DNA from: Corallochytrium limacisporum Hawaii
Taxonomy: Eukaryota; Protista; Pluriformea
NCBI GenBank assembly: GCA_002811645.1
Contig: PDIP01000100.1
Location: 38,220-86,541, forward strand
DNA: 48,322 nucleotides
Direction of reading: 5' to 3'
Shown here piece after piece: positions 1,317 through 41,344 of the stretch. Both the position numbers and the translations under genes were made by a program. Under the pieces are notes generated by a model that was given only the letters and a program-made list of their open reading frames with translations, did no database searches and was not told the DNA's origin. How positions within the stretch are numbered: the stretch's first letter is position 1; the number at the start of each line of letters is the position of its first letter.

Positions 1317-2414
1317 ATGAAAATGGTTGCTCAAGACAAATTCCTCAACTCTGAGCTTGCTGCCTGCCTGTCTTTGAAGGGCATCGATGAGGTGGAGGCG
1401 CTGCGCAAGACAAGCGCCTTTGAGAATCTTGTTGACCCTGAGGAAGACACGATTCCTTGCTTGGATCTAGAATGGGCGTTTGCGTCAAAAGCCAACAAGT
1501 TGCAAGCAGCTAAGGAATTACACGTTGCCATGCGGGATATTGGTTTCATGTGCGTAAAGAACCACGGTGTCGACCCTTACTTGAAAGATCAGATGGAATC
1601 TAATGCCCGCGAGTTTTTCCACCTTCCCGAGGAAATCAAAGCGCAGTATGCCGACAAGCAATTTTATCGAGGGTGGATGAAGCGCTTCTTTGAAACCATT
1701 GGCACCGGAGCTTACCGAGACGTCAAGGAAAGCTACGGGGCGCCCACTTTTCCAGACGATCTTCAGGAGCTGTGGGTCAGAGAAATCCCAGACTTCCAGT
1801 CCACTGTCCTTCGTTACATAGACAGCGTCCGTCGCAGTGGCTTCAAGATGAATCGACTCATGGCCTTGTCGCTTGGTCTGGACGAAGAATACTTCAACCG
1901 TGAGCTATTTTGGAACGGTCTTGGCTTCGGCAATGAGTTTATGCGTCTGAACTACTACCCAGAAAAGCTGCATTCAAACTGCGAGAAAGGAACATTCGGC
2001 CTTGGACAGCACACAGACTTTGGATGGATAACATTCCTGGCCTTTGACGGCACACCTGGCCTGCAGATCCAGCGTGCAGATGGCACTTGGTTCAGTCCCA
2101 AGAACGTCACTCGGGACACGATCATTGTCAACCAGGGTGACTTTGTTCAGCGGGTCACGAACGGTAAGTACCGTTCTACCATGCACAGAGTGCACAACCC
2201 CGCGGGCAAAGAGCGTATCAGCTTCCCGTACTTCTTCAATCCCAACTACAATGTAATTGGTAGGCCCATCGAAAAGCTCTTGGAACCTGGAGAGCAGCCC
2301 ATATACGAATCTATGAGCTTTGGAGAGCACATCTTGCACTGCGAGAAAACCATTTGCCGTACTACTCATGGCCAGATGCCCGACCTGGATGAGCTGGCCT
2401 GTGCTAAACAGTAG
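1317..2414 (+). CDS. Fe(II)/2OG dioxygenase (DIOX_N + 2OG-FeII_Oxy), copy B
   Basis: IPCLDL...GFMCVKNHGV N-terminal motif, RLNYYP, HTD...H facial triad, RxS (ERISF). The start may be Met 1323, as in the paralogues. Confidence 0.95.
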   Translation: MKMVAQDKFLNSELAACLSLKGIDEVEALRKTSAFENLVDPEEDTIPCLDLEWAFASKANKLQAAKELHVAMRDIGFMCVKNHGVDPYLKDQMESNAREFFHLPEEIKAQYADKQFYRGWMKRFFETIGTGAYRDVKESYGAPTFPDDLQELWVREIPDFQSTVLRYIDSVRRSGFKMNRLMALSLGLDEEYFNRELFWNGLGFGNEFMRLNYYPEKLHSNCEKGTFGLGQHTDFGWITFLAFDGTPGLQIQRADGTWFSPKNVTRDTIIVNQGDFVQRVTNGKYRSTMHRVHNPAGKERISFPYFFNPNYNVIGRPIEKLLEPGEQPIYESMSFGEHILHCEKTICRTTHGQMPDLDELACAKQ

Positions 2415-3868
2415 CTGATGGTACGGCCAGCAAATGTAAAACCAGCTAGCCGGCATTTTGTATCGAACGCAATTACCCTCAGCCGATTACAAATTAGATA
2501 GATCCAACTGCCATCCTCAATACACATGGTTTCTACTGGTAACCCCCCATCGAAAGCTCTGCAGCATGAGCCACTGGCTTCAACTGAGTTCGAATTCGAG
2601 GCCCACCCCAAAGATATCGTTGGCAAGAGCTCTCCCATCCCAACGGTTAGATGCCCACTCGCCTTGTTCTTAGGTAAGAAAAGAGGGGAGGGGGAGGGGG
2701 AGGAGGGCCGCGGGGGGCACAGTGTATGAATTCATTCGGACCAGTACTAAACACCATCTGGAGAGCCACACCCAAAAAGAAAAAAAAAGAAAAAAAAAAA
2801 GAAAAAAATTCTGTTGTCCACTCCTATTCCCCTCCCCCCCTCGCTTCTTGACCAGGGGCAAAAAAAAAACTTTTCCTTCCGTTTGGGGGAGTATTACTTC
2901 TGCCCTGGTTAATTCTACAACCCTTAGGCATCTAAGCACCTGAGAAGAACATCTGTGGTCCACCGTCTATAAATACTCGCATGGCAAAGTCTTCGGTGTG
3001 CGCTCTGTGTGTCTCTCTCTCTCTCGTGGTCACTTCCTTACGCGCACGACCAGCACTGTCCTCCAGTGCGCGCCATCCGTGGGTCCGTACAATTGTATGG
3101 GTGCATCGTAGCTCCTTTCTGCAATGTTCCGCTTGCTTTCTTCGGAACGAACCACTCCTACGCCGGGTGCTTATTTGCAACCCCTCCCTCCCGGGACGAA
3201 GAACGTTCAGGCGCCCCGAGGGGGGAAGAGAGAGAGAGCCAGAAACGCGAGAAGGTGGTAGTGGAGAGTGGTGGCGAGGGTGTCGACAACCTCTTTTTTT
3301 CTTTTTCTTTTTTCCTGTGTATCCTCAGCTCCCCTTTTTCCTTTGCTTTGAGACAAAGAATTAGTTTGCTGCGTCATCTCGCAGGTGCCACCACCCCCAG
3401 AAGCCAAGGCCGGTGTGCTGGGGAGGGGTAAGCTTTGGTTTTCCTTTCCCCATTTCGTTCCGCCCGCCCCCCCTCCCTTCCCCAACGTTCGAGCGAATTT
3501 TCGATAGTGAAGCGCTGGAGACGAGATACCCATTGGGCGGCACTCGTCCTCTACCACTGCCGTGTCGTTAGAATATCGGACGTGTCGTTAAGCGCCGCAC
3601 TAAATTCCAATACTGCGCATATTTTGATATCGGCATGCAAAGACAGATCTAATTGCGTCTGTTTGGTTTTCTTGCGCTCGTCTGGGAATGTGCTGTCACG
3701 GCAAATACTTACAACACTTATCCCGGAAGCTGAAGCAGAACGCGGATCGGCATGTAGTTGCAAGCTAGTTAAGGATGTTTACTGGCTAATAAGAAGTTTC
3801 CGACAGGTGATCACTATGTCACAGTAAGATTCAGTGCTTGCCAGACCTCAACCAGACAAAAATTCACT

Positions 3869-4960
3869 ATGGTTGCTGAAGACAAATTCGTTTATGCTGA
3901 GCCTGCCACCCGTCTTTCTCTGGAGGGCGTCGGTGAGGTAGACAAGCTGCGAAAGACCAGCGGTTTCGACCACCTGGTTGATGCGGAGGAAGACACCATT
4001 CCTTGCTTGGATCTGGAGTGGGCCTTTGCGTCTGAGGCCAACAAGTTGCAGACGGCTAAAGAACTGCACACTGTCATGCGGGATATCGGCTTCATGTGCT
4101 TAAAGAACCACGGGATTGACCCTTACCTGAAGGATCAGATGGAATCCATTGCCCGCAAATTCTTCCACCTTCCCGACGAAGTCAAGGAACAGTACGCGGA
4201 TAAACAGTACTTTCGGGGATGGATCAGGCGCTTCAGTGAGATTTTAGGTAAGGGTGACTACCGAGATGTCAAAGAAAGCTTCATGCCTCCCACCTGGGCT
4301 GGTGACTGCCAGGACTTGTGGGTCAAGGAAATCCCGGAGTTCAAGTCTATAGTCCTCCGCTATTTCGACAGTGCCCGAGGCACTGCCTTCAAAGTCAACC
4401 GTCTGATGGCCCTGTCTCTTGGGCTGGATGAGGAGTACTTCAACCGCGAACTGTTTTGGAACGGTCTCGGCTTTGGTGCTGAACTCGTGCGCATGAATTA
4501 CTACCCTGAGAATCTGCGCTCCAACTGTGACAAGGGCACCTTTGGCCTTGGCGAGCACACCGACTTCGGTTGGCTCACATTCCTTGCCTTTGACGGCAAC
4601 CCTGGCCTGCAGATCCAGCATGCCAACGGTAGTTGGTTTAGCCCCAAAAACGTGACGCGGGACATGATTATCCTCAACCAGGGCGACTTTGTCAAGCGTC
4701 TGACCAACGGCAAGTACCGTTCTACTCTGCACAGAGTGCACAACCCGGAGGGAAAGGAGCGCATTAGCTTCCCATACTTCTTCAATCCCAACTACAACGT
4801 GATTGGTAAACCAATTGAGAAGCTCTTGGAACCCGGAGAGAAGCTGGAATACGAGCCCCTCACCTTTGGGCAGCACATTTTGCATTGCAGGACCACCGTA
4901 ATCCGTCCGGACACTGGCAAGATGCCAGACCTGGAGGAACTTGCCCGCTCTGGACCGTAG
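3869..4960 (+). CDS. Fe(II)/2OG dioxygenase, copy C
   Basis: 363 aa with the same motifs (GEHTDFG, LHRV, ERISF). Confidence 0.95.
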   Translation: MVAEDKFVYAEPATRLSLEGVGEVDKLRKTSGFDHLVDAEEDTIPCLDLEWAFASEANKLQTAKELHTVMRDIGFMCLKNHGIDPYLKDQMESIARKFFHLPDEVKEQYADKQYFRGWIRRFSEILGKGDYRDVKESFMPPTWAGDCQDLWVKEIPEFKSIVLRYFDSARGTAFKVNRLMALSLGLDEEYFNRELFWNGLGFGAELVRMNYYPENLRSNCDKGTFGLGEHTDFGWLTFLAFDGNPGLQIQHANGSWFSPKNVTRDMIILNQGDFVKRLTNGKYRSTLHRVHNPEGKERISFPYFFNPNYNVIGKPIEKLLEPGEKLEYEPLTFGQHILHCRTTVIRPDTGKMPDLEELARSGP

Positions 4961-5455
4961 ATCTGTACCTGCCTACCGTTATTTAAACCTACAAACACAA
5001 CATCATCCATCATCATAGCATCAAAAATCAATTTATCTCGACTGTTAATAGACACAAGTTAGCGACCATCATCATTCGTGCTTCCAACGGAGATCCATGT
5101 GCCTTCTTCATCACTACCATTGAACTCATACTGAATGTATTCAACCTCCCCCGCTCCCCTCCCGCCAGGTCCAGTCCGCCAGCTGCCCCAGGGGTCCACG
5201 GCAACCCATCCCAACGCAAGAAGAGGGCTGACTATCGATGAACACTCATCATTACCTCACCTCCCAAGAAGTTAGGTGCAAGTGTTAGACATTGCACAGC
5301 GTACCACCAGTACACAGGTTGCCACGAAGGCGAAATCAATGAAGGGGTGTCAGGCACCGACCCTTGCCATCGCGATAGGCGCACCAAACGGAGAACGAAT
5401 ATGCCTTATCTTGGCGAATGGGATAACGGTGTCAATTTTTCTTCGCTTTCGCTCA

Positions 5456-5458
<3 letters not shown>

Positions 5459-5521
<63 letters not shown>
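5459..5521. repeat. (TC)n microsatellite abutting an assembly gap
   Basis: Perfect TC dinucleotide run. Confidence 0.98.
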
Positions 5522-5607
5522 NNNNNNNNNNNNNNNNNNNNNNNNNNNNNNNNNNNNNNNNNNNNNNNNNNNNNNNNNNNNNNNNNNNNNNNNNNNNNNN
5601 NNNNNNN
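5522..5607. other. Assembly gap (N run)
   Basis: Run of N between two microsatellites. Confidence 1.
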
Positions 5608-5691
5608 GTCTCTGTCTCTGTCTCTGTCTCTGTCTCTGTCTCTGTCTCTGTCTCTGTCTCTGTCTCTGTCTCTGTCTCTGTCTCTGTCTCT
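5608..5691. repeat. (GTCTCT)n hexanucleotide microsatellite, about 14 copies
   Basis: Perfect tandem repeat after the gap. Confidence 0.97.
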
Positions 5692-6319
5692 GTGTCTCAC
5701 TATCCCCTGCTCAGCCCATTCGTTCGTTTCTGGGCCGGTACTTACTGGCACGGCACTGTGTGCGGGGAGGGAGGAGGGAAGTAATTAAAGGAGAGAGAGG
5801 TTGCCTTGCAAAAAAAAAAAAAATGGCGATCTAACGTGCTGGGGAAGCAATACCGCAAAGGAAATAGCTTTTTCCATCTCAGGTCGGAACCTCCCGTCCC
5901 CTCCCGGGGGGGGGGGACCAAGGCCTCCCCCTTCCCCCCTCGACCGTTCTTCTCTTGCCCTGCCTGCCTTTTGCTAGGTCCCTTCGTACGCACCTAAGAG
6001 GCTCGGCCGGACGGAATGCGCACCCACCTCGGCTGCGTTCGAGCGTTGGGAACAGGAATTGGAATCAAACGTACATAGCCACCGCAAGCACTTGGGGATC
6101 AGATCCTCAATCACAACGGATCCTTGACCTTTGTTCTACGTTTACATTCGGTTCGCCTTCGGAACAAGGGCACCTTGAATGTTGCTTGAGAAGTTGGTAC
6201 TATTTTAGGGACTCCGATCTCAATCTATTGAGGGATATTCAAAAATGTATTCGTGCGTCACTGGTCAGAATCTCTGCTTTCTAGAATTGAATGCGTTAGA
6301 TAGTACCACGATATTCAAC

Positions 6320-7408
6320 ATGGTAGCTGAAGACAAGTTTGTAAACTCTGAGCCTGCCACCCGTCTTTCTCTGGAGGGTGTCGGGGAGGTGGACAAGCTG
6401 CGGAAGACAAGTGCCTTTGAGTATCTGATTGATGCAGAGGAAGACACCATTCCGTGCTTGGATCTGGAATGGGCGTTTGCGTCTGAAGCCAACAAGCTGC
6501 AGGCGGCTAAGGAACTGCACGTTGTGATGCGTGATATTGGATTCTTGTGCGTGAAGAACCACGGTATTGATCCGTACCTCAGGGAGCGGGTGGAGTCAAA
6601 TGCCCGCCAGTTTTTTCACCTACCCGACGAGGTTAAGGAGCAATACGCCGGGAAGCAGAACCTTTGTGGGTGGATCAGGCGCTTTGCTGAGTACGTTGCG
6701 GGTGAATATCGGGATGTCAAAGAAGTCTATTGTACCCCAACGGTTGCGAGTGACCTACAGGAACTGTGGGTCACGGAAATCCCGGACTTCCAGTCCGTCA
6801 TCCTCCGCTACATGGACAGCGTTCGCCGCTGTGGCTTCCAAATGAATCGTCTCGTGGCCTTGTCTCTCAATCTAGACCAGGAGTACTTTAACCGTGAACT
6901 GTTCTGGAACGGTCTCGGCTTTGGTCATGAGTTCATGCGCCTGAACTTCTATCCAGAAAACCTGCATTCAAACGCTGAGAAGGGCATCTACGGCCTGGGA
7001 CAACACACCGATTTTGGCTGGCTTACATTTCTTGCTTTTGACGGCAATCCCGGTCTGCAAATTCAGAGTGCAGGCGGTCGTTGGTTCACGCCCAAAAATG
7101 TGACCCGAGATATGGTAGTCATCAATCAGGGTGAGTTTGTCGAGCGATGTACCAACGGCAGATATCGTTCCACGCTGCATCGTGTACACAACCCTTCAGG
7201 TAGGGAACGAATCAGCTACCCAGTCTTCTTCAATCCGAACGCCTACGTAGTTGGTAAGCCCATAGAAAAGCTTCTGGCACCTGGAGAAGAGCCGAAGTAC
7301 AAAGCTCTGACATTTGACGAACACATCAAGGAGAGGCAGCGTGCCATCATCCGCACAAACGAGGGCAAAGTGCCTGGAGAGGAAGAATTGGCCCGTAGTG
7401 AGCAGTAG
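6320..7408 (+). CDS. Fe(II)/2OG dioxygenase, copy D
   Basis: Start placed at MVAEDKF (ttcaacATGG) by comparison with paralogues; HTD/H/RxS intact. Confidence 0.94.
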   Translation: MVAEDKFVNSEPATRLSLEGVGEVDKLRKTSAFEYLIDAEEDTIPCLDLEWAFASEANKLQAAKELHVVMRDIGFLCVKNHGIDPYLRERVESNARQFFHLPDEVKEQYAGKQNLCGWIRRFAEYVAGEYRDVKEVYCTPTVASDLQELWVTEIPDFQSVILRYMDSVRRCGFQMNRLVALSLNLDQEYFNRELFWNGLGFGHEFMRLNFYPENLHSNAEKGIYGLGQHTDFGWLTFLAFDGNPGLQIQSAGGRWFTPKNVTRDMVVINQGEFVERCTNGRYRSTLHRVHNPSGRERISYPVFFNPNAYVVGKPIEKLLAPGEEPKYKALTFDEHIKERQRAIIRTNEGKVPGEEELARSEQ

Positions 7409-8849
7409 GTTCAATATCCTTCCAGTCCGGAAAAGAGAATAGAATACTTACCACACCATCCATATATCCCATCATGTCAGACACCAACAGCCTGCCCCAT
7501 CAGCCAACATTGGATCACCATTAAAGCAACATCATCTTCCCATCACCACTCCGATAAAGGAGTACTGTCTTCCACGGTCTTCTCGCTTAAAGCAGCTGCA
7601 GTCATATGATGACCACCTAAGGTTATGACGTTGAGCCCCCCAGTGAGCAGAGTCACCCGTGACTCCTCGACAAGCCTTTGCTGCCCGAGCCACTTCCTGC
7701 CTACCATAACGGTCATGAAATTATCCCATTTGGATGCATCAGTCCCTCCGGTGAGTCGACGCGCAATCCCCCCTTTCGCCTGGTTGTTCCGCTATACAGG
7801 AAAGGAGAGCTTCAGTTCTCACAGCCGTAGAAGAGATGGAGGAGGGAGGGGGGGGGGAAGAGGAGGAGAACGGCATTGGCGGCTGCCCGGTTCACAGGCC
7901 ACCTCTGACGAAAAACTTTGGGGTGGATATCATTCTCACAGCGCCGTTTTTACTGCAAACATTCCTTAACCTTCGTACTCAAGGAAAGAAAAAAAAAATA
8001 GGGGAAAAAAATTACGGGGATACCAGCCCCGTATTTCTTTCCTGCACAACAGACTCAATCACTAAACCTTTCAATCTCTCCAGGACATTCCCTGTTGACG
8101 CCGCTTTCCTTTCGCAGGCCTCTCAGTCGCTGTCGTTGCTATTCAGTTGTCTCATTCTTTTCTCTGGACCGTGATTCTGCCGAAGATAATCTCTTACACC
8201 TTAAATACCCCCCCAAACCCCCCTTTTACCAGGCCAAAGGCCCTGAATACCCAAGAGAGAGAGAGAAAGGAGGGGGGGGGGAGATCTCCCTTTCCTTCGT
8301 ATGGAACTTGGGATCTCTCAGTCTTTCTGTCTCTTCCTCTCTCCCGCTTCCCACTCGGGCAGAGAGGGGGGGGGGAGGTGTTTGTGTGTAAGGTCCCCCG
8401 CTGTATCTCTACCACGGGGCGAGGAGCGTTGCCCAAAGAATTTGGGGTGGGACAGAGGGAGGCCAGAGAAACATGTCTTAGTGGTAGCAGAGTTGTGGAC
8501 AGCTGCACATTCCTCTCTTGTCAAGTCGCGCAGGTTGGCTCTACCAGTGCTGGCCACCTCCCCACCACCGTTTCGCTTCGTTTGATTGCCTTATCCAGGA
8601 CTGGCCTGCCCACTGAGGGCCGTGCCTCTGCCGTATTAAAAATTTCCAGGGTAGCGCGCCACCCGTAATACTTCAAGTGGGTGAGGTGGGGGGATAAGGT
8701 GAATTGCATAAGGTATGGGTCACATGAGCCAACCCAGGCAATTCATCGGGCAACCATCATCTCAAGTCATTTTTTGGTTCCCAGAGTATGTGTATTGACA
8801 ATTTCTATGTGTTTAGTGTGAAACCGTAGGAACAGATTCTCGAGACTGG

Positions 8850-8856
8850 TATAAAT
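8850..8856 (+). promoter_or_regulatory. Putative TATA box of copy E
   Basis: TATAAAT about 110 nt upstream of ATG 8967; similar spacing at copy F and the histone genes. Confidence 0.4.
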
Positions 8857-8966
8857 TGATCACAGATCCCAAAGTGACGCTGAGGCGCGGTCGTCGTCTT
8901 TGATCAGTATGCCGCAGGTACGATAACAGTGCGCTCCAGGCTTCACCCTAGTAAGAAATATTCAGC

Positions 8967-10058
8967 ATGGTTGCCGAACACAAATTTGTCAACTCTGAGG
9001 CTACTTCTTGTCTGTCTCTGGAAGGATTCGATGCGGTGGACAAGCTGCGCAAAACCAGCGCCTTCGAACATCTGGTTGATGCGCAGAAGGACACCATTCC
9101 TTGTCTGGATCTGGAATGGGCATTTGCGTCCGAAGCAAACAAGCTGCAGACAGCTAAAGAATTGCATGCTGTTATGCGGGACATTGGCTTCTTGTGCTTG
9201 AAGAACCATGGCATTGACCTCGCCCTCAAAAATCGGGTGGAGTGTAATGCTCGCAGATTTTTCAACCTTCCCGACGAGATTAAGGAGCGGTATGCCGATA
9301 AGCAGCCTTTCCGGGGCTGGATGAAGCGTTTCTGCGAGGTTATTGGTACTGGGGAGTATCGAGATGTCAAAGAAAGCTATTTAGCGCCCGTTCTTGCCGT
9401 TGACCTACAGGAATTATGGGTTACGGAGATTCCAGACTGGCAGTCAACTATCCACCACTACATGGACAATGTCCGCCGGACATGCTTCAAGTTGCATCGC
9501 CTCATGGCCTTGTCCCTTGGGCTGGATGAGGAATATTTCAACCGCGAGCTATTCTCGAACGGTGTTGGCTGTGGTCATGAGCTCATCCGCATAAATTACT
9601 ACCCGGAGAATCTTCACTCCAACGCCGATAGGGGTACTTTTGGTCTCGGTGAGCACACTGACTTTGGCTGGCTCACATTCCTTGCCTTCGATGGCAACCC
9701 AGGTCTGCAGATTCAAGACGCCAACGGCAGTTGGTTCAGCCCCACAAACGTTACGCGGGATATGATCATCGTCAACCAGGGTGACTTCGTCAAACATCTT
9801 ACCAACGGCAAGTACCGTTCTACCCTACACCGCGTGCACAATCCGGAAGGAAGGGAACGCATCAGCTTTCCTATCTTCTTCAATCCCAACTACAGTATTG
9901 TTGGAAAGCCCATTGAACAGATCTTGGAACCCGGAGAGGAGCCCAAATACGAAGCTTTGACCTTCGGAAAGCATATCCTTGGTCGAAGGGTTAGTACAAT
10001 CCGTAAAGACATTGGCAAAATGCCGGATCTCGAGGAACTTGCCCGCGGCGTAGAGTAA
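8967..10058 (+). CDS. Fe(II)/2OG dioxygenase, copy E
   Basis: 363 aa; HTD/H/RxS intact. Confidence 0.95.
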   Translation: MVAEHKFVNSEATSCLSLEGFDAVDKLRKTSAFEHLVDAQKDTIPCLDLEWAFASEANKLQTAKELHAVMRDIGFLCLKNHGIDLALKNRVECNARRFFNLPDEIKERYADKQPFRGWMKRFCEVIGTGEYRDVKESYLAPVLAVDLQELWVTEIPDWQSTIHHYMDNVRRTCFKLHRLMALSLGLDEEYFNRELFSNGVGCGHELIRINYYPENLHSNADRGTFGLGEHTDFGWLTFLAFDGNPGLQIQDANGSWFSPTNVTRDMIIVNQGDFVKHLTNGKYRSTLHRVHNPEGRERISFPIFFNPNYSIVGKPIEQILEPGEEPKYEALTFGKHILGRRVSTIRKDIGKMPDLEELARGVE

Positions 10059-11806
10059 ATCCGGGTCCGTAGTTTATCAAAAACACACATTCAAACACAG
10101 CATGATTCACTGTCCATACCCGATCACTAGATAACATTAGCATTATCCTACATTACATGATTAGCGATACATCATGACTCTATGGCCTTTCTTGCTGACA
10201 TATTGCGAGAGTCTAACCGCACCCTGAAGCAGACGTGTATGGACGGTCCGGACGGGAACTGCCCAGACTTGGTGAGATGGACTGCTTCTTTCGGAAATGA
10301 ATTGGGGCACACGGTTTGTCTGCATTCCTGGTCGGAGATGGTAAGCACCTTTGTCCTGAGAGTTTACTGATAATCCTCACCATTTGGTGAGAGCATGCAC
10401 CATGGATCTATGTCTTGCGTTCATGCGGGCTCCCAGTCAACACTACCGCCCCGTCTTCTCCAGGACTACCCCTTCCGTCGAACTTTTTGGTTTCAGATGT
10501 TTTCCCTTAGCCACGCGGTACACAGCCTCTTGGGTGCCTCAGTGGTCTCATTCTTACGCGAAAAACCCACACCTCAGTCCACCTTCACACAGCTGTCAGC
10601 TCGCAAAAGAAAAAAGAGAAACCAGGGAAAGGGCGGGCAACACAAGACACTCCGGAGTTTATAGCGACAAAAGTGGAGGGCGCGGTGTGCGAAATGGCCC
10701 GTCAGAGGTAGCCGGGGAGGGGGGAGGGGTGAGGAGAGGCGGTGAGAGGTTCCATTAGCCAAACGGGCAGGGCGGCTCCCCCCTTCTCTACCCGACCGAA
10801 CCGAAAACATTTCCTTCCCGCGCAGCCACGTAGTTTTATTCTTAGTTGCTGAGGTCACCCGCCTCCAGGACCTCGCCCTTGCTTTGCGGGTTCACTTTGC
10901 CGAGCCCCCCCCCCCCTCCTCCCTCCCTCCTTTCTTGTCACCGAAGCTGCAAAACCGTGAAAAGCCGCCCAGATCAGCTGGAACGCTTGGCGTCAGTCCC
11001 GCAAACGTGCCTAAGTTATTAACAGGTACGGGTCCAGGCTATTATTAAACCTCGTCCCGTCTTTTTTCGTTAGTTTTGTTTTTGTCCTGTTCATCTTCAA
11101 CTCCGCAACACCACCGGCGGTTAGGACTGTACTAAAAAAAAATACCGAGTGGCTTGTCCCGCCAAAGGCGAGACCTTCCAAACGGGCGGCACGAAGAGAG
11201 AGACGAGAGACCCCTCCGGTGCGCACGTAGAACGAAGGGAAGGTTTCCCCCCCTCCTCCTCCTCGGGGACCCAGGGTCCCTGTTTGATTTGTGCCTCGAG
11301 CTCTGGGGATGAGACGAGGCGGGTCAAAACCCCTTCAAAACCCCCCCCCCCGGGGGGGCAGCGGAGAGCCGAAGAGGCGGAGTAAAGGAGAAGAGAGAGG
11401 GGGGGTAGATCGAAGTCATCGATCCTTTTGCCCCGAAAACAAGAAAAAAAAAAAGGTGAGATAAAAAGGATTTCGTTCCCGGGAATACTTCGGTTTGCGA
11501 TTCCGTCGCAGACGCGCTAGCCCGACCCCCCCCCCGGGAGAACCCATCTTCGTGTGAAGCGGGACCCGTACCACGGTCGCACTGGGTTTCCTTTTCCCCG
11601 CTTTGCCCCGTGGCGGTGGGTGACGGGACAATAGGAACTGCTCAGGGACGAGAACGGATGCTGGTGTACTGTACTGATCTGGAATTGTCCACATAGATTG
11701 TGATTTGCAAGGAGCATGAGACATCTATAATTTTGTCCATTTTTGTGGTTTTCCCTGAATTCTTTCTGGTATGTGCCGTATTGGGGACTCCGGTGCTGCG
11801 GGAGAA

Positions 11807-11813
11807 TATAAAT
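11807..11813 (+). promoter_or_regulatory. Putative TATA box of copy F
   Basis: TATAAAT about 96 nt upstream of ATG 11909. Confidence 0.4.
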
Positions 11814-11908
11814 CGCGAGCTATTTGAGGAAACTGCTTTTCCCAATCCCTGCTACGTCTCCGATAAGGATCAATATGCAAAACACAAGTTTTTTTGACTC
11901 TCTTAAAC

Positions 11909-13000
11909 ATGGTCGCTGAAGATAGATTCGTAAACTCTGAGCCTGCCACCCGTCTGTCTCTGGAGGGTGTCGGTGATGTAGACAAACTGCGTAAGGCAAG
12001 CGCTTTTGAATATCTAATTGATGCGGAGGAAGACACCATTCCCTGCTTAGACCTCGAGTGGGCGTTTGCGTCCGAAGCAAACAAGCGGCAGGCGGCTAAG
12101 GAACTGCATGTCGTCATGCGGGATATCGGCTTCTTGTGCCTGAAGAACCACGGGACTGACCTTGTCCTCAAAGAGAGGATGGAATTCAATGCCCGCAAGT
12201 TTTTCCACCTTCCCGATGAGATCAAGGAGCAGTATGCCGACAAACAGTATATGCGGGGATGGATTAAGCCGTTGAGTGAGGCTGTTGGTACCGGGGAGTA
12301 CCGGGACGTCAAGGAGAGTTATGTGGCACCTACCTGGGCTGCTGACCGCCAGGATCTCTGGGTCAAAGAGCTTCCCGATTTCCAATCCACCAGCCTACGC
12401 TACATGGACAGTGCGCGGCAGACTGGCTTGAGGATGAACCGCTTAATGGCTTTGTCTCTTGGTCTGGACGAAGAGTATTTCAACCGTGAACTGTTCTGGA
12501 ACGGTATCGGCTTTGGCGATGAAGTCCTCCGCCTCAACCACTACCCTGAAAACCTGCGCTCGAACGCCGCAAAGGGCGTCTTTGGGCTCGGCGAGCACAC
12601 CGATCTCGGTTGGCTTACGCTGCTTGCCTTTGACGGCAACCATGGTCTGCAGATCCAAAGCGCAAACGGCACTTGGTTTAGCCCTAAGAACGTAACGCGG
12701 GACATGCTTATTGTCAATCAGGGTGACTTTGTCCAACGCCTCACCAACGGCGTATATCGCTCCACAAGGCATCGCGTGCATAACCCGACAGGCAAGGAGC
12801 GTATCAGTTTCGCCTTCTTCTTCACACCCAACTACACTGTGGTCGGCAAACCCATTCCACACCTTCTGAAGCCCGGAGAGAAAATGAACTACGAACCCGT
12901 AACCTTTCTCCAACATATAGACGAGACTGAGAGAATAATGGTTCGGCCAGGTGAGGGCAAGATGCCGGACTTTGAAGAACTGTCACTCGGTGAAGAGTAA
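11909..13000 (+). CDS. Fe(II)/2OG dioxygenase, copy F
   Basis: Start at MVAEDRF (ttaaacATGG); HTD/H/RxS intact. Confidence 0.94.
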   Translation: MVAEDRFVNSEPATRLSLEGVGDVDKLRKASAFEYLIDAEEDTIPCLDLEWAFASEANKRQAAKELHVVMRDIGFLCLKNHGTDLVLKERMEFNARKFFHLPDEIKEQYADKQYMRGWIKPLSEAVGTGEYRDVKESYVAPTWAADRQDLWVKELPDFQSTSLRYMDSARQTGLRMNRLMALSLGLDEEYFNRELFWNGIGFGDEVLRLNHYPENLRSNAAKGVFGLGEHTDLGWLTLLAFDGNHGLQIQSANGTWFSPKNVTRDMLIVNQGDFVQRLTNGVYRSTRHRVHNPTGKERISFAFFFTPNYTVVGKPIPHLLKPGEKMNYEPVTFLQHIDETERIMVRPGEGKMPDFEELSLGEE

Positions 13001-14355
13001 TCCTCCACATCACCATAAACCCCATATAAATCCAACATCCATTCGCCGCCATAATGCATCATCATTACAAACGTTTTAATTCGCAATCCACCTGGCTGCA
13101 TTCAATGACTTTTAGGTACTTTCAACCAGGGAAGCAGGCCCGTGCGAGAGTTCGTTTGTGGTCCCTTCTCCCTCCCTCCCCATCGCATCGCCCCCTCATC
13201 TTTCGGCAGAAGGGTGTGGGGGGGAAGAATCCAGTTCGACCAAGCGTACCACCAAGACCCAGAGGCCTCCACGGTGTTTGGTTTTTCCTTATACCCCACC
13301 ACTCCCCTTTCCTAAACACACCAACAACGACCAAAAGAACCTGTTTTCTTTTTTTCTTTCTTTTCTTTTCTTCGGGTTTTTACTCTTCGGGTTTATGGAG
13401 GGGGAGCAATGAAAATGCTTTTCGCCATTCTGAAAGGAAAAATCTGGCCGCTCCTTTCCCCTTAACCCTAACCCTTTGGCTAGTGGACGGGCGGGACCTT
13501 ATAGTTTCCCCAAAAATTCTCTGCCATTTTTGTTTTTTTTTCTATTTTTACTTTTCTTCCTTTTTTTTCCTTTTTATTTTTTCTTTGTCTCAAACGGCGG
13601 CGGGGGCTTTTTTTTTAATCAACGCGGGCCAAAAGACTACATTTCTCCTCCTCGGCCAACCTGAAAAATCTCCCCCCCCCCCCAGGGCGGCCCGCGCGAG
13701 GACCTCACTCTCTCGGTCTTCCTGCCGGGCTCTGTTACCCTTTCACGGGAAAAACTGAAGCCCTCGTCACACATCGGCGGTGGGGGGGGGGCGCCGTGGT
13801 GTTCAATTACGGACTGGGAATACAGGTCACCAATTGGTTCTCCAAGGTTCTCCTTCACACCTCATGTCTCCCTTTGCCCGTGTGTCTCAACCACGCTCAT
13901 CAACTTTTCGAGCTTGCATTTGTGCGACACCCGTGGGTGTGGATGGCTATGTACCCATAGCTGTGCCTTTGCCTGGGTGTTGCCGTCCCCGAACGCAGTA
14001 TTGTGTGCATAACCCTTTGTGCGTAAGATCTGTGCGACACTGGATGTCTCGTAGGGCTGATTGCATAGAGATGTAAGAACGTTTGTTTACCCTCCACCGA
14101 CAGGCCCCCACGAAAGCGATTGGTAAAATCCGAACGCGATTACCGAATTCGGGACATCGGCTTAATCCCCCCTTCACAAGGTCCCTGCGCTGTTCCATTG
14201 GGGAGATCCCAAAGCTTTGCAGAGGAAACAATGAAGCTCCCAAGTCTAAGTAGTACTTCAACCAGATCTTTGTGCCGATGAAATAGCCTCCTGTATCAAA
14301 CCGCTTGTCCACAACGGTTCTTACCTCGATCTTCTTTTACACTTGGTTGGACAGG

Positions 14356-17300
14356 ATGATCAGGAAGTGGGTGCCAGCGAAGCCGGAAGAGGGCAATCCC
14401 TTTGGCTGGACAGCTAGCAATGCCTCAAGATCTTCAGGATCTCCCCCTCCAGGACCCGGAGAGAGCAGTGAGGACTTGGAAGCCGCTGAATCGCAAACCA
14501 CAAACCGGATCTTGTTCCCTGATCAAACGGCACAGACAGATCAGTTAGGATCAGGTTCAACAAAAGTGAAAAAGACATGGAGAGTTGATGTCCACGGTCG
14601 CAAGCACTTGAGTTTCCTCGCTTGGGACTTTGCCCCTGCCGACACAGTGATCCACCCTTCTTTTGGATCCGTTGCGGTCCCACTGCAACGCCTTCGCGCG
14701 GAAGCACTGCACAGATCAATGCGTAGCAGCAGCTCTGGCTCCTCCGCCTTTGGTGACTCGGAAACTACTATGTCGTCCGTGGCTGCCGTTCCGTGGCTGG
14801 TCCAGCCCTTCCATCGTCTTCCACTGATTACTGCGCTTCTCTACGACGGTGGTGTCTTCAAACGGAGCGATTGGTGCTTCGCTGACGACGACGCGACACT
14901 GTTCGCTGTCTATCCACGGATGGTGGAAGACAAAGTGCGCCACGTAGTATCCGAGAGACCCGATAATGGCCGCTATAACATCGGAGATGTTGTCGCTGTC
15001 TTTCACAACGAACGCGTTCGGAGCATTGAGGGCCATGGTCAGTGCTCTACGGCAATTCAGCGCATGGTTTCTCCATGTCGGTACGCGGTTGTCATGCCCG
15101 CTCCTGCCGAACGACAGTTTGCACTTCTCCTTGCTCCGCTGATGTCGAAGAAGCAACGCAGACAGGCCGTCTCCGTGTCCCGGAAGCTGGAACGTGACAG
15201 AGAGAGGGAACGGAAAAGAAAAGAGAGGGAGCACCAACAAGCAGAGCAATTGCAGGCAATAGCGGAGTCGGTAGCGACGCCCAAACCGCCGAGCGAAGTC
15301 ATTCCCACGGCCTCATCTCCGGTGGTGGACTTGAAGCCCTCTCTGCAACCGGCTTCAGACCAGGCCACGCCACAGAAGAAGAGGCAGACCAATCGCGAAC
15401 AGCATGATCACCATGATGCTGTACACGAGTGGAACGTGAGCATGGACCTGGTTGCGGATGAGAACCTGAAGCCACGCAAAGTGTACGCTGAGGACTACAT
15501 TGCTTTCGTCAATGGAGCCATTGATCTTAAACTAGTGTATATACCCGGATCATCTTCATCTTCTTCAGTGTCCAGGACACCGACAGGGTCGTCCATGACC
15601 TCATCCGCGACGATCACAGGTGGAGAACAAGAAGATTCTGACAGTAACATAGACGACAACATCAAAATCATGCCTGATGACGATGATGAGAGAAGCCAAG
15701 GGAAATCAAACTCTTCCAAACAAAGGGAATGGCAGACAGTAGGAATGACGCCGAATCCTGGTGAAGTATGGGCCATCAAATGTCCGGATCATGGCGCCAT
15801 AAACGGTGCTGGAGGCTTTCAGTTAGTCCTTGTCATTGGCGACAGGACTGATTGTCGCTCCGATCCACTCGCGAAGGCCACCCTCGAATTGCGCAGACAA
15901 CGGGACAAATCTCTGTCTACACTATCACATCGGGACGTCGACATGGGCACAACCGACAAGCCCCCTCCAAAGCGCCGCAAAGTGTACTCTGCCGCTTCTT
16001 CAAGGACATGTAAGGTTGTGCAGTGCCTTCGCATTCAACGCTCCGCGACTGTACCGGATTTACCATTGTTTGTCTGCCGCCCGAATCCTCGGTGTGCGTG
16101 TTATGGAGTACCTGAAGCAATCTTCCATCACCGTGTGCCATTTCGACCATATGCGCTGCTATGTGGGGCGGTTGGATTGCTTGTGGATCCTTCGTGTCTG
16201 GGTTACGGCCGTCTACCGACAACATCAGCAAACCAGCCCGGTCACCAACCTAGTGAGCATGTTCACGCGCCGAAGAAGCACAAAGAGCGCTCTAGTGTAG
16301 TGGAATATGAGGGTTGTGAAGACGAAGACGATTGCTTATTGTTCGGTACGAATTCGGCCCGAACCAACACCAATGGTAGTCATCTGGGTGATAGTCGCGA
16401 CGACGGCGATGATGATCACCCAATCCTAGATTTTCCGGAACCAGACACTATCAAAGAAGATGGGATGGCTGCCTGGACCGGCTTACGACCCGAAGCCCAC
16501 AGGCTGCAGAGCTATGTCCCACTATCCGAGATTGAGGATATGGATGCCGCTTGGCACCACGCGACAACAAGCCTTGGAAGCCAGGCGATGCCGCCTGAGC
16601 TCTGTGCCCGTCTCGCGCGCCTCCAAAAGTCTACGGCAAAACGCGAGAAAGATCGCCTGGCCGCTGCCCGGAGACAGGCGGTCATTGACCGTCGGGCACG
16701 ACTCGCACAAGTACGCGAGCAGAATGTCCGCCGGCGCGAGGAGGAGCGACAGCGCCGGGCGCAGTGGCAAGAGGAACAGAAGCAGCGCCGTGCCAAGCAG
16801 CGTGAAGAGAACGCACGGCAGACCGACAAAGAGCGACGCCGGCGCTTTGAGTTTGAACGGCAAAATGAGGAAACTGAGCGCGACGCCGTGGCACAGCTCC
16901 AAGCGGCGTCTGCGGAAATTCGCGCACAACGCATGATGCAGCGTCTTCAGCGCAAAGGTCAAGTCTTCCAGAAGTCAACAAAGGCCACAGAGGCATTGGA
17001 CTGCATGGAGATTGAAGACGGGCAGATTAAGACGGAGAAAGAGTTGCCAAACGCTCAATGCCCGGAGGATAGCATGACCGGCATGGATCACATGTACGCG
17101 ACCTGTGCAACATGTCATCAGGAGTTTTGGTTCATGAACCTCGTCCGGTGCGACATATGCCGCGCTCTGCACCATTACCAATGCCTTGCGCCAGTCACGG
17201 AAACGGATGCGCTATCGGAAGAGAATAGAAATGAAGGGGTGGAGACCGCCCTCGCTGTGGATCCGAGCCTCCGCCAGCATTTGACCTGTGTTCCGTGTGT

Positions 17301-18966
17301 GCCAGACCTGCAAGGACCGGTCAATATTGAAACCGATTACATTTGCGGCGTCAGGGCGTATGGGACCGACCGTGAAGTTCATGTCCTTGTTCTGCGCAGT
17401 TTGGTGTCCGATCCGAAAACTAGCTTCGGTGACGCAGTGGCGGAGAGGAGTGCCACAAATGGATTGGACAATAGCACAGAGGCACACGGAGACCAGTTCC
17501 CGGCCTTGTTCCAGTCCTCGTCAGTGCCACTCCAACGCTGTACTCTTCGTCAGCTTTTAACGGATTTTGGAGCCGACGGTGTCGCACTGTGGGCGAGATT
17601 CTGTCTGCGTGACCCGGCCGCTTCGGAAGCGGTTGTGTTCGCTCCAGGTGGCAACAGTCTACTGTCGATGTTGCGATACCAGTCAACGAGCGCAATGCTG
17701 CACTGTTTGAGGACGGTGCTCCCGGGTGGGATCACGCGGTGCATGTATTTCATGGCCGGCAACGGCCGGCCGTTTGGCATCATTCAGTATCTGAATGTGT
17801 TCACGGAGCGAGAGCTTGCTGTTCTGGAGCAGCACGTGCATGAGCAAATCGCTCACGCAGATTTCCTTGACCATGAAAAGCGAAGATCTGCCCTTGAACA
17901 GGAAGAACCGGCAAACGGGAGTGGCCAGGGTCATACTGAGTTCAATAGAGAGGAAGGTATGCAGGACAGTGGTGTACTGGCCGAACCCGGATCAGAGACG
18001 TGTAAGGATGTGTCATCGAAGAGGACTACGTCCACTGCCGAGCTCAAGCTGGTACCTAAGTCCGAATCTGACTTTGATTCCGACACTCGACGATCATTTG
18101 CAACGGGTTTAGACGACCGCCGGATCACCGCCAAGCGCCTCAAGATCTTCTATGGCCACCGGTATGTCTACCGCGCGCGGGATCGAACCTACGAGGATCG
18201 CCTCTACGCGGATGTAGCCAGCATGCCAGAACTGCATAGCCGAACATGGTCGGAGATTGCGACGCGGTGCCAGTTGGAGCCGGACGGGCATGACCCGCAT
18301 GCGTTTCTTACCTTTCCCGAGGTGCAGAGACTTGAGCAGGAGATCACGAGGACCTCGTCTTCGGTACAGTATGGACCAGTGGCGTCGCCATCGTTGCTTA
18401 CGTCTGCTCGACCGCAATACAAGGCCATGACGAGCTCTGTGATCAACGTGTACCTCCCCGGAGGTGGCTTGGGCCTGCATACTGACTCCATGGCCCTTTT
18501 CGACACGCCTATCGTCAGTCTCAAGCTGTTCGGCGAATCTGACCTCTGTTTCGGCGGTCGTTCCGTTGGAAAAGTTCTGTCCGAGCAGAAATTCAGCATG
18601 CCTCGAAACTGCGTGACGCTCATGTACGGTTATGCGGCATTGGGAACGAGGCACTGTGTCCGTGGTAAGGCTGTGCCATTCAACGCGACGCTACTCTGGC
18701 GTCGTGCTCGCAGCGAGAGCCTGATCCAAGCCACCGGTCCAACCGCAGCGCAAACGGGCGATCGGTATTCCCGAGTGAACATTACGGGTGATTTATGTGA
18801 TGTAAGCGGCAGTACCAAGACCCACGACACGACGATGGGATCCATAGACCTGTCCAATGCGACCGACACCATGCTGATGAAAGACGACATGTCCCTACAT
18901 TCTCCCATCCATCAGCAGCAAGTCAATAGGGTAGCAACTGGAACTCCCACAACGACAGCAGAATGA
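14356..18966 (+). CDS. Multidomain protein: DUF3444-like region, coiled coil, PHD finger and C-terminal ALKBH5-like AlkB dioxygenase
   Basis: First ATG at 14356. C4HC3 finger CATC..CDIC..HYQC..CVPC (~17104-17298). AlkB domain (~17775-18705): KIFYGHRYVY, SSVINVYLPGG, HTD, PIVSLKLFGESDLCFG, GYAALGTRHCV, matching ALKBH5-type motifs. PGEVWAI / FHHRVP / LVDPSCL resemble DUF3444. Confidence 0.85.
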   Translation: MIRKWVPAKPEEGNPFGWTASNASRSSGSPPPGPGESSEDLEAAESQTTNRILFPDQTAQTDQLGSGSTKVKKTWRVDVHGRKHLSFLAWDFAPADTVIHPSFGSVAVPLQRLRAEALHRSMRSSSSGSSAFGDSETTMSSVAAVPWLVQPFHRLPLITALLYDGGVFKRSDWCFADDDATLFAVYPRMVEDKVRHVVSERPDNGRYNIGDVVAVFHNERVRSIEGHGQCSTAIQRMVSPCRYAVVMPAPAERQFALLLAPLMSKKQRRQAVSVSRKLERDRERERKRKEREHQQAEQLQAIAESVATPKPPSEVIPTASSPVVDLKPSLQPASDQATPQKKRQTNREQHDHHDAVHEWNVSMDLVADENLKPRKVYAEDYIAFVNGAIDLKLVYIPGSSSSSSVSRTPTGSSMTSSATITGGEQEDSDSNIDDNIKIMPDDDDERSQGKSNSSKQREWQTVGMTPNPGEVWAIKCPDHGAINGAGGFQLVLVIGDRTDCRSDPLAKATLELRRQRDKSLSTLSHRDVDMGTTDKPPPKRRKVYSAASSRTCKVVQCLRIQRSATVPDLPLFVCRPNPRCACYGVPEAIFHHRVPFRPYALLCGAVGLLVDPSCLGYGRLPTTSANQPGHQPSEHVHAPKKHKERSSVVEYEGCEDEDDCLLFGTNSARTNTNGSHLGDSRDDGDDDHPILDFPEPDTIKEDGMAAWTGLRPEAHRLQSYVPLSEIEDMDAAWHHATTSLGSQAMPPELCARLARLQKSTAKREKDRLAAARRQAVIDRRARLAQVREQNVRRREEERQRRAQWQEEQKQRRAKQREENARQTDKERRRRFEFERQNEETERDAVAQLQAASAEIRAQRMMQRLQRKGQVFQKSTKATEALDCMEIEDGQIKTEKELPNAQCPEDSMTGMDHMYATCATCHQEFWFMNLVRCDICRALHHYQCLAPVTETDALSEENRNEGVETALAVDPSLRQHLTCVPCVPDLQGPVNIETDYICGVRAYGTDREVHVLVLRSLVSDPKTSFGDAVAERSATNGLDNSTEAHGDQFPALFQSSSVPLQRCTLRQLLTDFGADGVALWARFCLRDPAASEAVVFAPGGNSLLSMLRYQSTSAMLHCLRTVLPGGITRCMYFMAGNGRPFGIIQYLNVFTERELAVLEQHVHEQIAHADFLDHEKRRSALEQEEPANGSGQGHTEFNREEGMQDSGVLAEPGSETCKDVSSKRTTSTAELKLVPKSESDFDSDTRRSFATGLDDRRITAKRLKIFYGHRYVYRARDRTYEDRLYADVASMPELHSRTWSEIATRCQLEPDGHDPHAFLTFPEVQRLEQEITRTSSSVQYGPVASPSLLTSARPQYKAMTSSVINVYLPGGGLGLHTDSMALFDTPIVSLKLFGESDLCFGGRSVGKVLSEQKFSMPRNCVTLMYGYAALGTRHCVRGKAVPFNATLLWRRARSESLIQATGPTAAQTGDRYSRVNITGDLCDVSGSTKTHDTTMGSIDLSNATDTMLMKDDMSLHSPIHQQQVNRVATGTPTTTAE

Positions 18967-19848
18967 TTGAGACAAAAAGAGTACAAAAAATCACGAACTA
19001 ATAGAGTAATCAAGTCTGACAAAGCAAACAGTGTCTCTGTTTGGAGTAATTTGTTGTTTGAACGAATGCTTTATGATGCAAGAAATAATGTATAGCATTT
19101 GAGCTTCCTCTTGACAGGAGACCATAGACATCTGCTGTCACGCTCTGGAATCCAGTCCAATGTTCAAAGTGTTTGGCTTCATGACCAGTCACAACCATGG
19201 CATAATTTGAAACGGACAAGGTCTCGAGATCAATCAATAGCACCATGTTAACCATGCTGTTCACAGTCCCACTTGCAACACTCTGAGCATGCTAATATCT
19301 GCTCAAACTTTAAGTTGCAGGGCCCTTGATACAGGCATGGTGAAGAAACATGTTGTTATGAAAAAGATATTCTTTAAAGCGAGTTGCTAGAAACCTTCCC
19401 TTGCCGCACCATCATAAATGGTACGTACCAGAGTGTGGAACGATGAACATAGAACAAAAGGGCCAGAACAGTCACTGCACATGGTCATTTCCTCTCCAGT
19501 CAAGACATATCAGCACAATGCCAGGAGAATGAAAATATGCTATGCTAAAAAACGATTGTGGTCAAAAATTTCCCACTACCCGGGAGCAATACTGAAACCG
19601 TACACTCCGAAAAAGAAAACCAAAAAATACCTTCGATCGGTCCCGATAGAAGATCAAAGCCCTCAGACATCTAAGGCGTTAACATGGTTCGAACATGATA
19701 CCGAGTTCTTCTCCTTTCATTCCGGATCGAAAATGTTTCCGTTTTTCTGATTCTTCTTATTGCCCGGTAGTACAAGAAATCATTGTGTTGAGTTTTGTGA
19801 TCAGCGTTAAGGTTGGAACTATCTGCACTTTTTAAAAAGACAATGCAT

Positions 19849-20103
19849 TTAGCTCAGTTTCTTGCGGAAAGAGCAACCGTTCATGAGGTGGCACTTGCCA
19901 CCGGTGGGCTGGCACAAGACCTGAGAGCAGCTACCGCACTGGACGACGCTCTGGGCGTGGCTGAACACAGTGGTGATGGCAAAGCAACCCGGGCACTTAA
20001 CGTCCATGAAGTAACTGTTGGGGGACTGAACCAAGCGCTTCAGCTTGTGGCGGCGCAGCTCGTCGTCCTTGGAGGGATGCAGGAGATCAGTAGCGAGAGG
20101 CAT
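19849..20103 (-). CDS. RPS27: 40S ribosomal protein S27 (eS27)
   Basis: [10 protein letters not shown]...[22 protein letters not shown]...C..C zinc ribbon...GCSFRKK; intronless. Confidence 0.98.
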
Positions 20104-21138
20104 GTTTGTTAATTTAAAAGTCTGACCCGTTATATAACACTAACTTGTAAAGGATATCCTATGCTACTCAAGAGAATGAACTACCTTAAGGTCTGATCGG
20201 TTTTGTACCTCAGCATGTGAGTGTGATTGTAATTATAAGCACATGAGCTCCCTATTACGATAACACACCCATTCATCCTCCTGCGCTCTCTCCCACAATC
20301 CCATTCATTTCCACACACAGTGTTAACTAAAGCTTTCAGGACTGCGTGCAAAGTGATCCAGGCGAAACAAATGCCTGCGAGCCGCATGAAACGTTGGCAG
20401 CAGAAAGTGCTCTTGCCCTTTGACGTCCACTCCGAAGCCAAGACCGCCCGGAACTTGGAGGAACGTCGAAACTCAGAGAGAGTGAGCGATTTCAGGAGCC
20501 CAGTGCAGTACATTCAGTACTCAAAAGCGAATACACCTTCCCCGGCCCCCCTTCCCGAGGCCCCTCCCTCTTCTTTCCAAATTCTTGAAGCTCCTTCGGC
20601 ATAGTGAATGAACTGAAAATTGGGCCTTTGTTGCAAATTCCGGTACTTTAGTACTGCGATCTGAACCGAGTCCCCGAGAGCAGCTGCTCTGTCCCCACTT
20701 CAACTCCCGTCCTACCCCCATCTTTCGGGACTATTCGTGGCCATTCACGGAGAATGGTCCCATTTTCCCAGGCCATTCACTATTAAACATTAGATAAATT
20801 GCGCACGTGGGGAGGGGTAGAGCCCGTCACAATTGGTCTTGGCAGTGAAGCCAAAAATGTGACGGAGGGCAGCCCGCGGTGGGACCGACGGAGAGCCCTC
20901 AAATTTTCTCCGAAATTAGCGAAATTCAGCGGCCCCTACTTTCCGGGAGAGGGGGTGATGGAATTTTCCAAAATTTTCTTATAAAAATTGTGTGTGAAAT
21001 TGATTTATTTGTGTGTGTTTTTCAGCTTTCATATATTTAGTATTGATATTCGGTTGGGTAGGGATACAGGGAGGGGTCGTTTTCCCTAAACAAAATGGAC
21101 TCCTTTTTTTTTGGTTTTCGTCGCCGTTCCCTTTCCCC

Positions 21139-40990: not shown

Positions 40991-41344
<354 letters not shown>

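Follow-up and report, generated by a model that had tools for sequence, protein, structure and literature searches.

Animal ALKBH5 is a protein of ~395 aa that carries neither reader domains nor domain inserts and acts on single-stranded RNA (ssRNA). Genetic evidence from Tetrahymena shows that the ALKBH5-clade protein DMT3 removes N6-methyladenine (6mA) from DNA around transcription start sites (TSSs), and the same study describes unicellular ALKBH5 homologues as much longer proteins with a split AlkB domain and lists Corallochytrium limacisporum as bearing both AMT1 and an ALKBH5 homologue (PMC12974511). In organisms with DNA 6mA, AlkBH5-clade proteins fused to a PHD finger and an AT-hook were earlier proposed as 6mA demethylases (Iyer, Zhang and Aravind 2015, PMC4738411). 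Here we describe a gene of C. limacisporum Hawaii, located in a 48,322-nt stretch of contig PDIP01000100.1 (positions 38,220 to 86,541, forward strand, assembly GCA_002811645.1; hereafter the window), whose predicted product joins an ALKBH5-type domain to a PHD finger. On balance, we lean towards reading it as a nuclear, chromatin-tethered ALKBH5-clade Fe(II)/2-oxoglutarate (2OG) dioxygenase that would act as a histone-guided eraser of DNA 6mA. PHD-ALKBH5 fusions, with a predicted role on DNA 6mA, have been on record since 2015 and a ciliate member of the clade was validated in 2026 (PMC12974511, PNAS), so the window protein is a further, unusually long example of a described fusion type, and the novelty implied by an earlier sequence-only reading of this DNA was overstated.

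The coding sequence and the elements of its catalytic region are given below (positions are those of the window, with the basis of each assignment in brackets):

14356-18966 (+): whole coding sequence, 1536 codons plus stop, intronless (single open reading frame, ORF)
17668-18720 (+): ALKBH5-clade Fe(II)/2OG dioxygenase domain, aa 1105-1455 (phmmer against the Protein Data Bank, PF13532, AlphaFold2, Foldseek)
18478-18486 (+): predicted HxD metal ligands H1375 and D1377 (columns invariant in 93 family sequences)
18652-18657 (+): predicted third metal ligand H1433, with C1434, the equivalent of human C267 (alignment)
18682-18705 (+): degenerate RxxxxxR, with N1443/A1444 at the first Arg (human R277) and R1449 at the second (human R283) (alignment)

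To establish the identity of the catalytic domain, sequence and fold comparisons were combined. A phmmer comparison of the last 436 residues with the Protein Data Bank (PDB) recovered ALKBH5 chains at E 1.8e-13 to 5e-13, and at E <= 1 it returned one further match, an unrelated protein (E 0.92), and zero other AlkB relatives. PF13532 was the only Pfam family called, at aa 1312-1437, with a score barely above its cut-off (31.3 vs 31.2 bits). The motif-by-motif likeness to ALKBH5 claimed by the sequence-only reading was borne out in full, with FGIIQY at aa 1140, KRLKIFYGHRY at aa 1260, EDRLY at aa 1280, VINVY.PGG at aa 1362, HTD at aa 1375-1377, PIVS at aa 1385, LCFG at aa 1397 and GYAA...RHC at aa 1425-1434. 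Two low-complexity inserts (~aa 1175-1255 and ~aa 1290-1355) split the domain, matching the split AlkB domain reported for unicellular homologues (PMC12974511). Modelling by AlphaFold2 from an alignment of 92 relatives placed the AlkB core at a predicted local distance difference test (pLDDT) score >90, with aa 1107-1190 and 1260-1470 confident and the inserts between them unmodelled. Upon comparison of the catalytic segment with Foldseek, the check that the earlier reading had proposed, the top 20 matches were all ALKBH5 chains (E 3e-13 to 8e-12, TM up to 0.73), with AlkB, ALKBH8 and ALKBH6 trailing at about 1e-6. Human and zebrafish ALKBH5 (PDB 4NJ4, 4NRO, 7WKV, 4NPL) are thus the best match in both sequence and fold, sharing with the window protein the double-stranded beta-helix fold, HxD...H, the Asn/Tyr pair, the second Arg, PIVS, FG and the Cys at C267. 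Taken together, sequence and modelled fold confirm the C-terminal domain as a member of the ALKBH5 clade of AlkB dioxygenases.

Relatives were collected by sequence search. When either the complete sequence or its AlkB domain served as query, word-index searches of proteins retrieved only the window protein itself. An exhaustive HMMER search with aa 890-1536 across 1.84 billion representatives returned 112 proteins, all of whose matches ran through the core at aa 1350-1465 (best non-self score, 79 bits). The HxD and second His line up with those of human ALKBH5 in the phmmer alignment, H1375 and D1377 corresponding to human H204 and D206; in a family alignment of 93 sequences, H1375, D1377 and Y1366 are invariant and N1364, H1433 and R1449 near-invariant.

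Besides the window gene, the genome encodes nine AlkB-type loci, against which the window domain could be placed. In agreement with the affiliation expected at the outset, the nine split from the ALKBH5 family, which contains the window protein, with a support of 97 in the Shimodaira-Hasegawa-like approximate likelihood-ratio test (SH-aLRT); of the three that were compared with solved structures, the best matches were ALKBH8, ALKBH6 or NMAD-1, and none was ALKBH5. On these comparisons the window gene is the sole ALKBH5-clade member of the C. limacisporum genome. Among the paralogues, L008 (925-1977, +) shows weak similarity to Caenorhabditis elegans NMAD-1 of the ALKBH4 clade (E 5e-5), which makes it a conceivable further DNA 6mA demethylase candidate of this genome. 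A free tree of the family placed the window protein, on a long branch (1.4 changes per column), within a 28-row clade (SH-aLRT 89) to which all of the reader-fused proteins belong.

The window protein deviates from animal ALKBH5 in two respects. The first concerns the 2OG-binding set, in which N1364 (Asn193), Y1366 (Tyr195) and R1449 (R283) are kept and the R277 position is occupied by N or A. Across the 93 family members, this column holds Ser in 50 and Arg in 25, the latter confined to the metazoan-like set, and 21 of the 66 non-metazoan members, a protein of the ichthyosporean Chromosphaera included, have no basic residue at either neighbouring position. Since the first Arg is missing in most non-metazoan members, its absence appears to be a clade trait rather than decay, and by this alignment an Arg at the R277 position is diagnostic of the animal subgroup rather than of the ALKBH5 clade as a whole. 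We accordingly rejected the missing Arg as a mark of inactivity. The second departure is G1401 at the position of human C230; C1434 (C267 position) and C1398 (C227 position) are retained. With Gly at this position, the C230-C267 disulfide of the animal enzyme could not form. That disulfide has been tied to the single-strand preference of human ALKBH5 (PMC12974511, citing Feng 2014), and the ciliate enzymes active on double-stranded DNA carry Ser at the same position (PMC12974511).

These features also bear on whether the protein might have another substrate (repair of 1-methyladenine or 3-methylcytosine, or a role as protein hydroxylase or demethylase) or might serve as a non-catalytic scaffold, a reader with poor 2OG binding. 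The residue found at the R277 position, the two long domain inserts, the long branch and the marginal PF13532 score would all suit such a protein. We nevertheless consider it quite unlikely, given that all three metal ligands, the Asn/Tyr pair and the second Arg are retained, that the missing Arg is common to most non-metazoan members of the clade, and that strain differences in the gene (described below) show a synonymous excess, the sole nonsynonymous change within the AlkB core falling in a variable column.

The second component of the proposed eraser is a zinc finger lying ~190 residues upstream of the catalytic core:

17098-17298 (+): PHD-type C4HC3 zinc finger, aa 915-981 (regular expression, Pfam, relatives' profile, AlphaFold2)

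Residues 917-981 read C-x2-C-x11-C-x2-C-x4-H-x2-C-x34-C-x2-C, a perfect C4HC3 array with canonical spacing in which a 34-residue loop precedes the last Cys pair; the Trp usually found before the PHD His is itself a His here (CRALHHYQC). The Pfam PHD model (PF00628) scored 13 bits (E 0.1), below its 24-bit cut-off. A profile built from the PHDs of 13 relatives, several of them above the Pfam cut-off and the window protein excluded, matched aa 915-949 at 21.4 bits (E 7e-8 for a single protein), a score above that of all 5000 composition-preserving shuffles (best, 18.2 bits). Furthermore, AlphaFold2 gave a pLDDT of 78-91 at aa 910-940, the first half of the finger. We therefore regard the PHD finger, as called by the sequence-only reading, as real, on the strength of its spacing and of the relatives' profile.

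The fusion of such readers to ALKBH5-type domains recurs among the closest clade of relatives, which is rich in PHD, Chromo, DUF3444, BAH and PWWP partners. PHD and AlkB are combined in P0002, P0004, P0012, P0021, P0025 and P0010, Chromo and AlkB in P0003 (Stenamoeba) and P0005, and all three domains in P0037; BAH accompanies AlkB in P0023 (Myrmecia), and PWWP and PHD together do so in P0015 (Aplanochytrium) and P0145. In three relatives, a DUF3444 domain that clears the Pfam cut-off precedes a C4HC3 finger and then AlkB: P0080 (E 2.9e-14), P0069 (E 4.2e-13) and P0094 of the green alga Cymbomonas (E 7e-8). In the ichthyosporean Chromosphaera perkinsii, P0011 carries two GxVWA modules, a C4HC3 finger and an AlkB domain, and hhalign pairs its N-terminal part with the DUF3444-type modules found in the algal and marine proteins (probability 94%, E 8e-8). 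As judged from these domain calls, the order DUF3444-PHD-AlkB exists in several lineages, Holozoa among them. With its ALKBH5-clade domain and PHD in an organism with DNA 6mA, the window protein is of the same kind as the fusions of 2015, and in the part of that article available to us DUF3444, Chromo, BAH and PWWP partners of the clade go unmentioned (PMC4738411); nor did our literature search find such partners described. No AT-hook was noticed by eye in the window protein, no dedicated search having been made.

Compared with the animal enzymes, the window protein differs in its length of 1536 aa and its PHD as well as at R277 and C230. It resembles Tetrahymena DMT3 and the 'unicellular ALKBH5' group in being long, in having its AlkB domain split by inserts, in the substitution at C230 and in the coexistence of AMT1, but it departs from that group in having Gly in place of the Ser of ciliates, and no PHD or other reader is reported there (PMC12974511).

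The integrity of the frame was also considered. The stop-to-stop ORF (14305-18966, +) runs uninterrupted through 1553 codons, and its first ATG, at 14356, gives the predicted protein of 1536 aa; the longest open run in the other frames of the region is ~180 codons. Contig pieces assembled from two public 2015 runs tile the coding sequence (14286-19024) without joints at a depth of 4-11, and the same two runs reach a depth of 465-1012 on the adjacent convergent RPS27 transcript. The RNA nature of these runs is a guess made in assigning them, and the contrast in depth fits RNA rather than genomic DNA. One could imagine that the frame is an illusion, in which a reader gene and a stand-alone ALKBH5 gene (or more than two genes) happen to lie in frame by chance: no read or contig covers the entire 4.6 kb, and several hundred low-complexity linker residues lie between the folded parts. 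We hold this to be very improbable, since 1553 stop-free codons far exceed the ~180 seen in other frames, contigs 16759-17257 and 16584-17065 bridge the charged helix (aa 754-869) upstream of the PHD and the PHD itself, and the same module order occurs in one protein in relatives of several lineages.

The two runs differ from each other within the gene. One shows 19 differing sites from the window in 2.3 kb of the gene (15087-18911; about 0.8%) and the other is identical, so the public data hold two strains or haplotypes. Synonymous changes account for ten of the 19 differences, and the replacements lie mostly in linkers. A pseudogene or chance ORF was considered and ruled out by the 1553-codon frame, the conserved catalytic columns and the synonymous excess.

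The RPS27 gene that served as the depth reference (ORF 19849-20103, -, within 19035-20130, -) has a transcript contig extending down to ~19035-19055, which places its 3' end ~10-70 nt from where the contigs of the ALKBH5-like gene stop (18990/19024), so that the two convergent transcripts nearly touch. The contrast in depth between the two genes is ~100-fold.

To distinguish between DNA 6mA and RNA N6-methyladenosine (m6A) as substrate, we searched the genome of C. limacisporum for the corresponding writers and readers. Only two MT-A70 loci were found, L012 (913-2010, +) and L013 (631-2184, +). One of them scored 238 bits against the MTA1/AMT1 chains of Tetrahymena and Oxytricha and 134 for METTL3, and the second had MTA9/AMT7 as its best match. 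AMT1 and AMT7 are DNA 6mA writers. No match to METTL3 or METTL14 was obtained, although the same MT-A70 search was able to catch the 34-bit AMT7-like match, and a YTH search, run with no positive control, likewise gave no match. With AMT1-like and AMT7-like loci present and METTL3/14 and YTH unmatched, the mRNA m6A writer-reader system appears to be absent from the genome. Nanopore data for C. limacisporum show high 6mA and undetectable 5-methylcytosine, and in AMT1-bearing species 6mA lies between nucleosomes marked by trimethylated histone H3 lysine 4, downstream of TSSs (PMC12695648). Both features associated with DMT3-type enzymes are found here, as the AMT1 pathway coexists in the genome and the C230 position is substituted (Gly). 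Because AMT1 and AMT7 occur without METTL3/14 or YTH matches, because 6mA is reported to be high and because DMT3 is active on it, we favour DNA 6mA over RNA m6A as the probable substrate. The earlier reading had proposed a histone-guided eraser of m6A on nascent RNA or of 6mA on DNA; the tie between an ALKBH5-type domain and a PHD reader stands and the DNA half of that proposal is favoured, whereas the RNA half is not.

That RNA half deserves its own weighing. A co-transcriptional m6A demethylase could act on ssRNA, its PHD merely delivering the enzyme to active chromatin with nascent transcripts. In keeping with this, all close structures with known biochemistry are those of RNA demethylases, and a position as sister to animal ALKBH5, which the species phylogeny predicts for a holozoan, was not rejected by the approximately unbiased (AU) test (p 0.47). 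We nonetheless judge it unlikely, as METTL3, METTL14 and YTH went unmatched in a genome where the MT-A70 search could reach a 34-bit match, the Cys equivalent to C230 is missing, and DNA 6mA is abundant in the organism (PMC12695648).

Under the reading that we favour, a histone-guided eraser of DNA 6mA, the PHD finger, possibly together with two degenerate DUF3444-like modules described below, would dock on the H3 tails of promoter-proximal nucleosomes. The AlkB domain would then oxidise the N6-methyl group of 6mA laid down by AMT1-AMT7 at ApT sites in DNA, and the oxidation product would shed formaldehyde, regenerating adenine. In this way the 6mA domain around TSSs might be trimmed or bounded, as by the ciliate homologue DMT3.

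Several observations weigh against this reading. The window protein lacks the first Arg of the 2OG-binding RxxxxxR (human R277). Constraining it to lie beside metazoan ALKBH5 costs 1.9 log-likelihood units, a placement that the AU test mentioned above does not reject. No ciliate sequence was recognised, by cluster name or composition, among the 112 HMMER matches, and the proposed kinship to DMT3 therefore rests on the tree of PMC12974511. The YTH search, as noted, had no positive control. Finally, the RNA nature of the two 2015 runs is guessed, and their contigs are fragmentary, none of them spanning the whole 4.6 kb.

C. limacisporum is a transformable, single-celled close relative of animals. 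Its sole ALKBH5-clade gene, together with the high reported 6mA and the lack of a detected m6A writer or reader, makes the window gene the obvious candidate eraser of a 6mA system in the animal stem lineage. The PHD offers a testable means of confining erasure to promoter-proximal nucleosomes, a point that the ciliate DMT3 study left open, and the gene bears on the timing of the switch of ALKBH5 from DNA to RNA.

The N-terminal part of the protein contains two candidate reader modules:

14938-15141 (+): candidate DUF3444-like module 1, aa 195-262, with GDVVA at aa 210 and CRYAVV at aa 241 (collinear with the relatives' GxVWA...P..YA.V; unproven)
15733-16155 (+): candidate DUF3444-like module 2, aa 460-600, with PGEVWA at aa 468 and IFHHRVPF at aa 589 (unproven)

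A split DUF3444-like region at ~14970-16200 had been proposed from the sequence, and this claim survives only in part. In a global alignment, five blocks are collinear with those of relatives (GDVVA at aa 210, CRYAVV at aa 241, PGEVWA at aa 468, a hydrophobic strand at aa 486 and IFHHRVPF at aa 589); candidate module 2 is broken by a basic insert, and its motifs match the relatives' second GxVWA and F.H.VP blocks. The short collinear motifs thus stand, as does the domain order in relatives, but no method reached significance in the window protein. Pfam DUF3444 (PF11926) gave no match at E <= 1, hhalign of the window N-terminus against the relatives' modules returned a 2% probability, DUF3444 module hidden Markov models scored 1-2 bits, and an ordered-block test with position-specific scoring matrices gave p about 0.09 (module 2 block, p 0.085). 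Similarly, AlphaFold2 modelling of aa 150-640 from a 9-row alignment was not confident (pLDDT 41), an ESM Atlas feature search with aa 455-625 returned no usable match, and a Pfam DUF3444 search of the C. limacisporum genome found nothing, its control being silent too. Judging from the collinear motifs, we give the DUF3444 identity of these modules roughly an even chance.

The closest architectural counterparts are P0011 (C. perkinsii Nk52_evm44s223) and P0094 (Cymbomonas tetramitiformis KAK3245510), in both of which two GxVWA/FSH modules are followed by a C4HC3 finger and an ALKBH5-type domain, as proposed for the window protein; the first Arg is missing from P0011 as well. Both are half as long as the window protein (779 and 784 aa), and their DUF3444-type modules, unlike those of the window protein, are detectable (P0094 by Pfam, E 7e-8; P0011 by hhalign, 94%). 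The plant DUF3444 J-domain proteins (JDP1-4/DILL, SDJ) are more distant in design, as the window protein has no J-domain and gave no significant DUF3444 match. In plants, DUF3444 binds the H3 tail and has been termed plant-specific (bioRxiv 10.64898/2026.09.14.751381), and if the N-terminal modules of the window protein are homologous to it, they would be H3-tail binders like the domain in JDP1 (10.64898/2026.09.14.751381). Among the ALKBH5-type relatives, DUF3444 passes the Pfam threshold in marine protists and in the prasinophyte Cymbomonas, and the ichthyosporean protein gives a significant DUF3444-like match; our literature search found no report of DUF3444 outside land plants. A broader scenario, which we put forward tentatively and regard as somewhat doubtful, is that members of the ALKBH5 clade were originally targeted by an H3-tail platform of DUF3444 modules plus PHD, which would be common to green algae, marine protists and unicellular Holozoa. 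On this view, the RNA demethylase of animals, which stands alone, would derive from an eraser of DNA 6mA tethered to chromatin, whose readers disappeared along with AMT1 in animals. The window protein would represent a rapidly evolving holozoan remnant of that state, and DUF3444 would extend beyond plants.

The folded parts of the protein are spaced by long charged helices and by linkers of low complexity. The remaining features are:

15139-15270 (+): charged R/E/K/Q helix 1, aa 262-305 (long helix in AlphaFold2, pLDDT 82-97; composition)
15961-15984 (+): PPPKRRKV, aa 536-543, a classical monopartite motif resembling a nuclear-localisation signal (direct reading of the sequence)
16615-16962 (+): R/E/Q-rich charged helix, aa 754-869 (25% R, 16% Q, 14% E, 15% hydrophobic)
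17323-17541 (+): post-PHD segment, aa 990-1062 (no fold supported)
18721-18963 (+): low-complexity C-terminal tail, aa 1456-1536 (AlphaFold2 pLDDT <45)

PPPKRRKV may serve as a nuclear-localisation signal. An R/E/Q-rich coiled coil had been called upstream of the PHD; the charged composition is present and makes a helix likely at aa 755-870, yet with only 15% hydrophobic residues this segment, like aa 262-305, looks more like a single charged spacer helix than a packed coiled coil. The weak resemblance of the post-PHD segment to a chromo or chromoshadow fold did not hold up, as Pfam returned no chromo match in the window protein at E <= 1, the relatives' chromo-like profile scored -1.3 bits (815 of 2000 shuffles equal or better), and the AlphaFold2 pLDDT was ~30.

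Elsewhere in the window, five tandem dioxygenase genes of the DIOX_N + 2OG-FeII_Oxy type (363-387 aa) lie immediately upstream on the same strand (1317-13000, +). They belong to a 2OG oxygenase family other than AlkB, and no link between them and the AlkB gene was found. The window also contains a histone H4 gene (40991-41302, -) and a histone H2B gene (42621-42989, +); histone H3 is encoded outside it, one such gene being at L015 (1483-1893).

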